Assembly: GCA_020891255.1 (NCBI GenBank)
Contig: BQFW01000014.1
Coordinates: forward strand, 1,674,001-1,738,000
Direction of reading: 5' to 3'
Origin: Entomortierella parvispora E1425
Lineage: Eukaryota; Fungi; Mortierellomycota
DNA length: 64,000 bases
A model generated the notes under the pieces. That model was not told where the DNA came from. It was given only the letters and a program-made list of their open reading frames with translations, and ran no database searches. Shown one piece after another: positions 7,894-54,467 of this stretch; position 1 is the first letter of the stretch, and every line of letters begins with the position of its first letter. A program made the translations under genes and the position numbers.

Positions 7894-8688
7894 TTTTTGA
7901 ATATTGGGTTTGTCTGTTGGTGGGGAGGAATGAGGAATGACCTTTTTCTTGAATGGGGGACATTTGATTTGCTTTATAACTACTGTAAGGCCTTCCTGGG
8001 CTGTCCTTGTTGGGTCTAAAATAAGAACCCCTGGTTGGTCTGTGGCACTTCCAATCTCTTGGCACACGCGTGGCACCCAGGCGGGCCGGGGCTGAGCGGC
8101 ATTAATGCCCATCGACATCAACGCTGCACAGTCGTTGTGGGGAATGAGCCATCAACATGGTAGCGACCCAGAAAAGCAGGTAAACGGCTGAAGGGGCAAG
8201 AACAGAGAACTGTCAAGAAGCTGCTGTTGCTGCTTTTGCTGCCCAAGTAATAATAATAAAAAAAAAAGTGCTGTGGGACAGGAAATGACAATACGGGAGT
8301 AGGGGTGCTGCGGGGTAGGGCTCTGTTGGAGCTCAACCATGACGCCCTGTGGGACCGTGTCTGCGCCGTGCTACGAATGTTTTACGTGCTGTTCCACTTT
8401 TTTCATTCTTCCATCCTTCAAATGCACAAAACGTTTTCTAGATTGAATTGCAAGTCTTTTATGGTTGACAGAAAGGGGACGTAAAAATGCTATTATTGAG
8501 ACTATTGGGAGTTTTGTACAAAGGCGAAGACATAAAAAGCAAGCAAGCAAATGGTAAAAAGGACAAGACTTGTCAAGGAGCGTGAAAGCAAACAAACAGA
8601 CAAGCGATATGGTGATAGAAGAATAGAGTACAACGGGGAGAGAAGAAAGACATTGCGGAAAGAGGTGCATACTAAAGGTCTTCGTTCC

Positions 8689-10389
8689 TTAGTCCTTTCG
8701 GAACAGGAAGAGTCCCTTGATGCTGTCATTGTCAAGAGCCTTTGGACTCGACAACAACGCCCTCACCAAAAGACCGCGGGCCACATCCTTGCGACCCTGA
8801 CGGAATTCTGTGACAATTTCCTCAACCACGGATGAGTTTAAACTGGAGATGGTGTTCTTGATGGATCCTAACTGGGCTTGGAGACTACGTCGCAAAATAT
8901 CCGGCTGTGGATTAGACAGACGACTCGAGAAGAGCTGTCGTTGTTGGATAAAAAATTGCGCCAGCTGCTGAAGCCGTTGCTCCTGCGTTGGAAGCGGCGC
9001 TTGCGGATTGCTCGATTGCGCTCCAGTCGAGATCAAGAAAAGAGTCGAAAAGTTCAGCATCAGCTGGGGCAGCATGTTGGTCAAAAAGACCATCATAAAG
9101 AGCGCCAGCGGACGTGTTCCCGCCGTTGGAGAAGAGGCCACTGGAGAGGAGGAGAGCGTCAAGGTCCTTTTGCGACTGTTGTTGCAAAAAGGCCGACAGC
9201 TGGTCTCCATCCTGTTCCGAGTAGCACTCTGACTCGACAGACGGGCTTCCCTGTTCAGACTCTTGGTCTTGCTCATCGAGGTCATCGTCGTCATTGAATA
9301 AACTCGTCGGTGTTTGTTGGAGTTGGAGGTTGTCGTGTGAAAGTTTCCCTTTGATGGAGTCAGCTTCTGCTGCGGAGAGTTGGTCAAGATGTTACTCTTG
9401 GCCTTCTTTGCCAGTACTGCAGACTATTGAAAGAAAAGGAAGAGGTTAATTAACTGTGCTGCTCCAAAGACAGATGGATGGATTTTGCAACGGTTGGATA
9501 TATTTTGCAGTACCTGGCAAAAGCCGACCCCGGGTTGGTTGTTGATGGTGTTCTCGTCGTTGTGGTTGTTCTTCTTGATATCGTTATCGTTGTTGGTGCT
9601 GACGACGCCAGTCATGGACATTGTCATGGCCAACTGTTGCTGCATTAGTGAAAACTGAGCAGTGAGGGTCTCCAGACGTTGAGAGAGGGACCGGTTGTCA
9701 CTCTCCACTGTCTTGAGTCTCTTCAACAGTTGGCAGTTCTCCTCCTGAAGGGTCTCGTTCGAGGCTTCAATCTCTGCGACATACTTGCGCTTCTTGTCTC
9801 TTGATTCTTGGGCCGCTGCTCGGTTGCGGAGGACACGCTCGCGAGCCTTGGCATCCTTGTCCATGGGGTCAGCTGCTGAACGCTTTCGACTGCTGCTATT
9901 TGAGCTGGCAGCCGATGACGATTCGGTAGAAGTAGCAGCAGCATTGGACGAGGCACGGCGGGCCTTGGAGGTCTTGGTCGAAGCGTTGGATGGCTCGGGC
10001 ATGTGGGTCATGACCGGCGACTCAAGCTTGAGGACCATAGGACTGATAGAGGGAGAGGTTGACCAGTCCGAAGACGAAGAAGAAGAGGAGGAGGTCATGG
10101 CAATAATGCTAGGGTCACTTGAGAGGGAAAGGTTGAGGTTGGAGGAGAGCGAGGCGGTCGAGGCCGAGTCCATCAACTGACTCAGCATAACGAGCTGCTG
10201 CAACTCTTCCCGGGTGGATGTGGATGTAGATGTAGAGGCTGTGGTGGTAGAGGAGGGGGTTGCAGAGGGGGTTGTCGCGGATACCTCGCTGTCCAGGTCT
10301 GCGTTGGACACTTCGCTGTCAAAGGGAGCATCAGCTGAAGAGGCATGGGCCATCATGTGTGGCAAAAGGGGAAGCGTTGTCGAGAACAT
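8689..10389 (-). CDS. HAC1: HAC1/XBP1-family bZIP transcription factor (UPR regulator). Exon 1 10389-9514, spliceosomal intron 9513-9424, exon 2 from 9423. Unspliced form ends at 8689 (about 536 aa); IRE1-spliced form ends at 8912 (about 446 aa)
   Basis: Basic region 'KARERVLRNRAAAQESRDKKRKYVAEIE' plus leucine zipper matches the HacA/XBP1 type; IRE1 cleavage loops and a frame-shifting 47-nt intron lie downstream. Confidence 0.92.
9373..9419 (-). other. Unconventional (IRE1-excised) 47-nt intron
   Basis: Bounded by CUG|CAGU and CCG|CAGC 7-nt loops; 47 mod 3 = 2; removal joins the bZIP exon to a stop-free acidic frame ending at 8912. Confidence 0.88.
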
Positions 10390-10623
10390 GATGGCCCGGA
10401 CAGAGGAGTCGAAGTTAAAGAGGGTTTATATAGAGGGGAGGGAGAGGGGGGCAAGGCTACGTGTCAAGAGGAGAAGAGAGCAGACAGGACAAGAAGGGAG
10501 AGCAGGGCGAGCAAGTGAAGGTCAAGAAGAGAGAGAGAGAGTGAGAGAAGTAAAGAAGAAAGGGAGTATGTGCCGTCGTGGCATTATTATAGAGGCAGCA
10601 GCGGGAGGGGCGTCGCTTAAGGG

Positions 10624-53155: not shown

Positions 53156-54467
<1,312 letters not shown>

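Follow-up and report, generated by a model that had tools for sequence, protein, structure and literature searches.

An IRE1-type hairpin interrupted by a spliceosomal intron in the HAC1 gene of Entomortierella parvispora and other Mortierellaceae

How does a transcript come to present the RNA structure recognised by IRE1 when its gene encodes that structure in two pieces? The question is raised by a 64,000 nucleotide (nt) stretch of the Entomortierella parvispora E1425 genome (contig BQFW01000014.1, positions 1,674,001 to 1,738,000; hereafter the window, whose numbering is used throughout), which carries on its minus strand the HAC1/XBP1-type bZIP orthologue of this soil fungus. Splicing that dispenses with the spliceosome has its textbook example in the HAC1/XBP1 switch, and in the described cases that we searched the IRE1 structure lies within one exon. 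In E. parvispora a 90 nt spliceosomal intron is placed inside the stem of the 5' IRE1 hairpin, 4 nt upstream of the IRE1 5' cut site (UCUG|CAGU). We report the anatomy of this gene, both of its splice junctions in RNA and the pattern of conservation among related genera, all of which are directly observed, and we weigh what the intron might mean for the unfolded protein response (UPR).

Exon 1 (9514..10389, minus strand) begins with an ATG at 10389, comprises 292 codons and ends on a codon boundary with ...GGCUUUUGCCAG at 9514; its residues 178-238 form a bZIP domain (Pfam bZIP_2, 5.2e-10; bZIP_1, 7.7e-08). The spliceosomal intron (9424..9513, minus strand) is of the GT-AG type and in phase 0, with borders GUACUG...UAG, a CU-rich pyrimidine tract and UUAAU/UUAAC branch-like motifs 22-26 nt from the acceptor, and, being also removed exactly in RNA (see below), has the features of a U2-type intron. 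Exon 2 in its uninduced frame (HAC1u) extends over 8689..9423 of the minus strand, with the stop codon at 8691..8689. Joined, the two exons encode 536 amino acids (aa) that are residue-for-residue equal to the deposited 'hypothetical protein EMPS_10504', so that the intron borders are also those of the public annotation; the orthologous genes are all annotated as 'hypothetical protein' or misnamed. HAC1u-type products are further represented by proteins P0001, P0047, P0048 and P0036. As the initial annotation of this DNA had stated, the intron is 30 codons long in E. parvispora and its acceptor UAG is in frame, such that reading through it gives a 321-aa open reading frame (ORF; 9424..10389) whose stop is the acceptor TAG.

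Exon 2 contains an IRE1-type unconventional intron of 47 nt (9373..9419, minus strand; 2 modulo 3), which has an internal hairpin. From 9423 onwards, exon 2 opens with U-CUGCAGU-ACUGGCAAAG, and this segment (9407..9423, minus strand) provides, according to sequence and folds, the closing base U9423, the loop CUGCAGU (9422..9416) and the 3' strand ACUGGCAAA (9415..9407) of the 5' hairpin; the predicted 5' cut, CUG|CAGU, falls between G9420 and C9419. The 3' IRE1 site (9356..9378, minus strand) is made of a UCU/AGA stem of 3 base pairs (bp; stem S3), the loop CCGCAGC (9375..9369) and the 3' strand AGCUGACUCC (9365..9356) of a central stem, S1, and its predicted cut, CCG|CAGC, lies between G9373 and C9372. 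Both borders of the 47 nt intron are therefore marked by 7 nt loops matching the IRE1 loop consensus CNG|CNGN as quoted in PMC4687415, and this is the case in eight genera of the family, the only variable positions being the last base of the 5' loop and the -2 base of the 3' loop, which is C, G or U depending on the species, as the consensus permits. Excision of the 47 nt changes the frame to a 446-aa form, in the same manner as the frame switches of HAC1, XBP1 and bZIP60. The C-terminal frame of this induced form (HAC1i; 8912..9372, minus strand, stop at 8914..8912) was identified by translation, from which its acidic, D/E/F/L-rich tail is predicted to resemble an activation domain. A counterpart of this tail is found in protein P0014, encoded by an RNA contig described below. 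The E. parvispora genome encodes an IRE1 protein with a KEN domain as well as a Trl1-type ligase carrying a CPD domain. Excision of the 47 nt would depend on IRE1 and be induced by stress.

The initial annotation had claimed that the 90 nt GT-AG intron splits the 5' IRE1 hairpin, and all of its sequence statements on this point hold. In the spliced RNA, UUUUGCCAGU pairs with ACUGGCAAAG over 10 bp, including one G-U, around the 7 nt loop. Folded in isolation, the 5' hairpin reaches -12.1 kcal/mol when spliced, versus -3.9 kcal/mol for the genomic sequence. Against dinucleotide shuffles the spliced region has a z-score of -3.6 and the genomic stretch one of +1.1, which argues that the split hairpin is more than a chance pairing. 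The same annotation had the outer stem spanning the junction as well, and this is borne out by a 15 bp exon-exon helix (9531..9517 with 9370..9356) that likewise needs the end of exon 1. In the context of the mRNA, both the minimum free energy (MFE) fold and the RNAalifold consensus of eight species predict this 15 bp helix, in which the last part of exon 1 (GGGGUCGGCUUUUGC) pairs with the beginning of the IRE1 3' exon (GCAGAAGCUGACUCC).

Folding with constraints gives an XBP1-like bifurcated stem-loop with a central stem of 10 bp, a 5' arm of 9 bp, a 3' arm of 3 bp and both 7-mers unpaired, and in all eight species its energy exceeds the MFE by 2.3-4.5 kcal/mol. The 5' strand of the central stem S1 (GGGGUCGGCU; 9522..9531, minus strand), supported by RNAalifold and constrained folds, is in exon 1, and that of the 5' arm stem S2 (UUUGCCAG; 9514..9521, minus strand) corresponds to the last 8 nt of exon 1. 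Because the spliceosomal intron separates the eighth base of S2 from the closing U, the 5' arm and the central stem both need the joined exon 1; in the predicted folds the stem closing the 5' loop (9-10 bp) exists only in spliced mRNA, while that closing the 3' loop has only 3 bp. Once IRE1 has cleaved, five bases of S2 (9521..9517) are predicted to pair anew with the 3' exon as a zipper, and the predicted product after excision is a 15 bp hairpin with a 9 nt loop, CAGUCUGCA, in seven of the eight species, the Dissophora version having one A-C mismatch. An Rfam scan of the spliced mRNA returned no relevant family.

These models support, at the level of predicted folding, the earlier proposal that the IRE1 substrate (5' stem-loop, central exon-exon stem and zipper) is complete only after nuclear splicing. 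The partition function gives the 5' closing pair a probability of 0.65-0.95 in the spliced RNAs versus 0-0.17 in full unspliced RNAs; only the unspliced Mortierella alpina RNA reaches 0.41, because the CAG acceptor there forms a 4 bp Watson-Crick mimic. The pre-mRNA can still form a 4 bp UAGU/ACUG stem. We also considered a single larger IRE1 intron without any spliceosomal intron, and rejected it: direct removal of 141 nt leaves the wrong frame, the donor CUGCAAA is stemless and has the wrong +3 base, and the RNA displays two separate junctions.

Evidence for the two splicing events comes from contigs of four public runs mapped to 8500..10600, which are assembled contigs and not raw reads. 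A 425 nt contig from a root metatranscriptome (X1) joins 9423 to 9514 and skips exactly 90 nt, the shorter of its two flanks being 162 nt long; the skipped segment ends in CT..AC on the plus strand, that is, GT..AG on the strand of the gene. The 9423 to 9514 joint is likewise present in a soil metatranscriptome (X2). A second X2 contig passes from 9514 through AGA (UCU on the gene strand) to 9373, and since it reads exon 1 + UCUG + CAGCAG it lacks both introns, with only 23 nt on one side of the joint. The excised form is also found at full length in a 1697 nt Logan contig (L013, run SRR33245415) of an M. alpina-like fungus, which encodes P0014; compared with the Mortierella alpina locus (L003), it is without both the 88 nt conventional and the 62 nt unconventional intron, and its junction reads ...GGCUUUUGCCAG-UCUG-CAGCAGAAG. 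Two metatranscriptome proteins from the Joint Genome Institute (P0047 and P0048), and also protein P0036, read GFCQ-SAVLAKK across the spliceosomal junction. The acceptor named in the initial annotation is thus the one used in RNA (X1, X2, L013). No intron-containing contig was seen in the four runs, a weak negative given that contigs can miss rare forms, and the depth bin inside the 90 nt intron is at about 0.1, versus 4-20 in the flanking bins.

One contig from a further metatranscriptome (X5, depth 3) joins 8788 back to 9372, 585 nt backwards, which brings it precisely to where the IRE1 3' exon begins. At 8788, neither an IRE1-like nor a GT-AG motif is present. This back-joint could represent a circularised or template-switched cleaved 3' exon, or an assembly artefact.

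To see whether the intron position is conserved, as the initial annotation had suggested checking, we compared orthologous loci from seven other Mortierellaceae genera (Gryganskiella, Linnemannia, Mortierella, Podila, Actinomortierella, Lobosporangium and Dissophora). The position is identical in all eight genera, with near-invariant flanks (...GRCUUUUGCCAG|GUA... on the donor side and YAG|UCUGCAGYACUGGCAAAG on the acceptor side), and the intron is consequently not a species-specific insertion. The start of exon 2 (9407..9423) is invariant except for the last loop base in Dissophora. The intron itself varies in length from 88 to 194 nt, and CUAAC-type motifs occur in the orthologous introns. 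It is 0 modulo 3 in E. parvispora only and 1 or 2 in the other seven genera. The IRE1 introns measure 41-62 nt and are 2 modulo 3 in eight of eight. In the central stem one pair is found as U-A, U-G or C-G and another as G-U or A-U, depending on the genus.

No intron splits the 5' hairpin in the outgroups (Phycomyces, Jimgerdemannia and two chytrids), whose genomes encode it in one piece. The Phycomyces hairpin is GCGAUU-CAGCACG-GAUCGC, and its inferred IRE1 sites, UCAG|CACG (cut after 3078) and CUG|CAGC (cut after 3282), delimit an intron of 204 nt that is in frame and contains a stop, with the junction peptide GFC-D-S|AAEA and a product hairpin of the same type as in Mortierellaceae. At this locus (L008:3063-3300), Phycomyces blakesleeanus has a 184-aa protein annotated as 'Skn-1-like bZIP', which from its sequence appears to be HAC1u; excision would extend its ORF into a DDLFDW-type acidic tail. 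Twin CAGCAGC hairpins are found in Jimgerdemannia (L012:2595-2710; 9 bp stem, 107 nt intron) and in the chytrids Rhizophlyctis (L009:2439-2462; a very short intron of 17 nt) and Quaeritorhiza (L010:2649-2699; 44 nt), all three introns being 2 modulo 3 and all three host genes being annotated as hypothetical proteins. This distribution suggests that the hairpin-splitting intron was gained on the Mortierellaceae stem or somewhat earlier. Protein searches yielded no Glomeromycota orthologues, so that beyond Mortierellaceae only Mucorales, Endogonales and chytrids limit how old the intron can be. The Mortierellaceae HAC1 gene (10389-9514) is also without the basic-region intron (K-E-R|V-L-R-N-R) found in Phycomyces (L008:2765-2826), an intron of a kind reported for the HAC1-type genes of Aspergillus, Verticillium and Cryptococcus. 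It therefore appears that one intron was lost and another gained in the same gene.

The explanation that we favour starts from an IRE1 substrate that would be an XBP1-like bifurcated stem-loop, with a 10 bp S1, a 9 bp 5' arm carrying the loop CUG|CAGU and a weak 3 bp 3' arm carrying the loop CCG|CAGC, whose exons would zip into a 15 bp hairpin after cleavage. The ancestor of the Mortierellaceae would have gained a spliceosomal intron that parts the 5' strand of the 5' arm from the closing base, and it is through this gain inside the 5' arm that the genome would have come to encode the structure in two pieces. Constitutive removal of the intron in the nucleus would then create both the IRE1 substrate and the 536-aa HAC1u frame; upon endoplasmic reticulum stress, IRE1 would cut both loops in the cytoplasm and the Trl1-type ligase would join the exons; and the loss of 47 nt would shift the frame into the acidic activation tail of the 446-aa form. 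An intron at this place would be tolerable, as the nuclear splicing step is invariably over before IRE1 cleaves in the cytoplasm; that the unspliced pre-mRNA makes a poor IRE1 substrate would be a by-product. We consider it quite likely that the intron is constitutive, lineage-specific and probably neutral, with the poor performance of the unspliced pre-mRNA as a side effect; its constitutive splicing and its neutrality are what we infer from the RNA and the comparisons above. The obligatory splicing order put forward in the initial annotation is real, as in Mortierellaceae IRE1 splicing must follow spliceosomal splicing, but it is largely redundant, for compartmentation imposes the same order in any HAC1 gene with a conventional intron.

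Several points weigh against this explanation. The RNA contigs derive from close relatives (85-99% identical) and not from this strain, and they establish which forms occur without giving their ratios; retention may occur at a low level or under particular conditions, as contigs hide rare isoforms. Both arm stems are invariant and so offer no covariation, their conservation could stem in part from the conserved peptide GFCQ-SAVLAK, and the 3' arm has only 3 bp. The family-wide fixed position, together with a recurring CCATCCAT motif, could also betray an unseen function.

Such a function might reside in regulated retention, a third state in which a transcript blind to IRE1 would encode a bZIP-only protein without activation domain (321 aa here) and thereby gate or dampen the UPR, as the initial annotation had envisaged. 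Folding does predict that intron-retaining RNA would be 'IRE1-blind', the 5' loop not being presented in unspliced RNA; in every species retention would truncate the protein just after the zipper, the intron position is kept throughout the family, and ATCCATCCAT is found in the intron of six of the eight species. The retained tail, however, differs in every species: the frames stop after 5-39 codons, the tails are unrelated, and with lengths of 88-194 nt that are 0, 1 or 2 modulo 3, the orthologues share neither a retained reading frame nor a product, the 30 codons ending in TAG being unique to E. parvispora. Together with the lack of intron-bearing contigs and the low depth noted above, this leaves a third isoform acting as a regulatory gate without support, and we regard regulated retention as very improbable. 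Nor is ATCCATCCAT of much help to it. The motif occurs at 9474-9483 in the hairpin intron (and in the introns of the loci L001, L002, L004, L006 and L007), but it is also found at 1650-1663 and 53684-53693 of the window and has 1078 matches genome-wide versus 33 for a reversed control, an over-representation of about 30-fold; in other intron-like sequence it is often an (ATCC)n microsatellite. Being so abundant, it is not specific to this intron, and it may be a general intronic element of Mortierellaceae fungi.

A function could instead be tied to the position of the intron and not to its retention: an exon-junction complex, which would be placed some 20-24 nt upstream and at the 5' border of the central stem, might link IRE1 competence to export or to the first round of translation, or the hairpin might be kept from forming in the nucleus. 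The position is indeed strict while length and sequence drift, and 4 nt separate the junction, itself within the ORF, from the IRE1 cut; yet the outgroups cope with a contiguous hairpin, and old fungal introns are often stable in position without having any function. This proposal seems to us decidedly unlikely. Taken more broadly, the hairpin-splitting intron might be a conserved licensing device that restricts IRE1 to HAC1 mRNAs which have passed through the spliceosome and have subsequently been exported or translated; the means might be retention tuned by stress, or else an exon-junction complex at the central-stem edge. We hold this to be unlikely; if it were true, the nuclear splicing machinery would become an input of the UPR in Mortierellomycota. 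A last alternative concerns the acceptor, as the CAG that ends the loop motif CUGCAG, 7 nt downstream, could serve in its place or beside it; the IRE1 5' site would then be lost, and the E. parvispora protein would be 302 aa long. All species have this AG, and the public Lobosporangium model P0010 ends in ...GFCQ-YWQRR, which fits a CAG acceptor. P0010 is, however, a gene model, no RNA contig shows the downstream acceptor, the junction is at 9423/9514 in the X1 and X2 contigs, UCUG still stands between exon 1 and the 3' exon in the doubly spliced ones, and P0047, P0048 and P0036 have GFCQ-SAVLAKK; as the main form, the CAG acceptor is largely refuted, and we judge this alternative extremely improbable. 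In Lobosporangium transversale (L006:2975-3025), the 278-aa P0010 uses the IRE1-loop CAG as acceptor, which destroys the IRE1 site and truncates the protein, and this acceptor is probably mis-modelled.

The metazoan XBP1 mRNA, for which a bifurcated stem-loop and an RNA zipper were described (Peschek et al. 2015, PMC4687415), resembles the Mortierellaceae HAC1 mRNA, as predicted here, in having two 7 nt loops with the consensus C(C/U)G|CAGC, a central exon-exon stem and two arm stems. In both, exons zip after cleavage (in our case in predicted folds) into an extended stem, a hairpin whose loop holds the ligation junction, and removal of a short intron shifts the frame into an activation domain. 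The whole XBP1 structure lies in one exon, whereas the 5' arm in Mortierellaceae is interrupted by a spliceosomal intron; moreover, the XBP1 intron measures 26 nt, in contrast to the 47 nt of Entomortierella with its own internal hairpin and a 3' arm of only 3 bp.

With hacA/HAC1 of Aspergillus and Verticillium and HXL1 of Cryptococcus, the gene shares the combination of a bZIP gene with one conventional and one unconventional intron, the CUGCAG repeats at both IRE1 sites and HAC1u and HAC1i forms that differ in their C-termini. The conventional intron of those genes lies upstream, in or before the basic region and far from the IRE1 hairpins, while that of Mortierellaceae is inside a hairpin, and the unconventional intron is 20 nt long in filamentous Ascomycota and 56 nt in Cryptococcus. 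The nearest relatives are the HAC1 genes of Mucorales and Endogonales (Phycomyces, Jimgerdemannia), which have in common with Mortierellaceae the junction peptide GFC-x-S|AAEA, the 5' strand GGCUUUUGC and a product hairpin with a 9 nt loop, but whose 5' hairpin is contiguous and whose inferred IRE1 introns are long (204 nt and 107 nt, respectively).

By its logic, the closest conceptual analogue is that of stwintrons and twintrons (PMC8469720), in which a recognition element is interrupted by another intron, so that the inner one has to be removed first. The analogy extends here across two different machineries: stwintrons use one machinery twice, whereas in Mortierellaceae the inner intron belongs to the nuclear spliceosome and the outer one would be cut by IRE1 and joined by a tRNA ligase in the cytoplasm, and the interrupted element is an RNA stem instead of a splice-site motif.

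The HAC1 genes of early-diverging fungi are barely described in the literature that we searched, in which one candidate, that of R. arrhizus, was found (PMC10946435). Our search retrieved neither a HAC1 of Mortierella nor a conventional intron within an IRE1 stem-loop, the conventional introns of HAC1-type genes being far from the IRE1 hairpins in that literature; as the main survey (Hooks & Griffiths-Jones 2011) was outside its coverage, priority is not fully secured. Within these bounds, ours is the first description of HAC1 for Mortierellomycota. These are oleaginous, plant-associated fungi that are used in biotechnology. In their HAC1 gene two unrelated splicing systems would operate within 4 nt of each other, the one, the spliceosome, having to put together the substrate of the other. 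Discontinuous encoding would accordingly not prevent a functional RNA stem from persisting as long as a fungal family does, and genome searches for HAC1 introns that rely on models of a contiguous hairpin will miss such genes. Should the intron be neutral, as we think most likely, the arrangement would be a neat evolutionary curiosity and not a new regulatory layer. The Mortierellaceae HAC1 offers a natural system to test for a nuclear splicing input to the UPR.

The HAC1u frame shows conservation of its own. Beyond the stop of HAC1i (8689-8911), it is conserved at the protein level across genera, with ...VIEEIVTEFRQGRK-ARGLLV-ALL... in P0036, P0047 and P0048, and its hydrophobic stretch PQLMLNFSTLFLISTG overlaps the acidic frame. 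This pattern suggests that HAC1u is translated and under selection, as XBP1u is.

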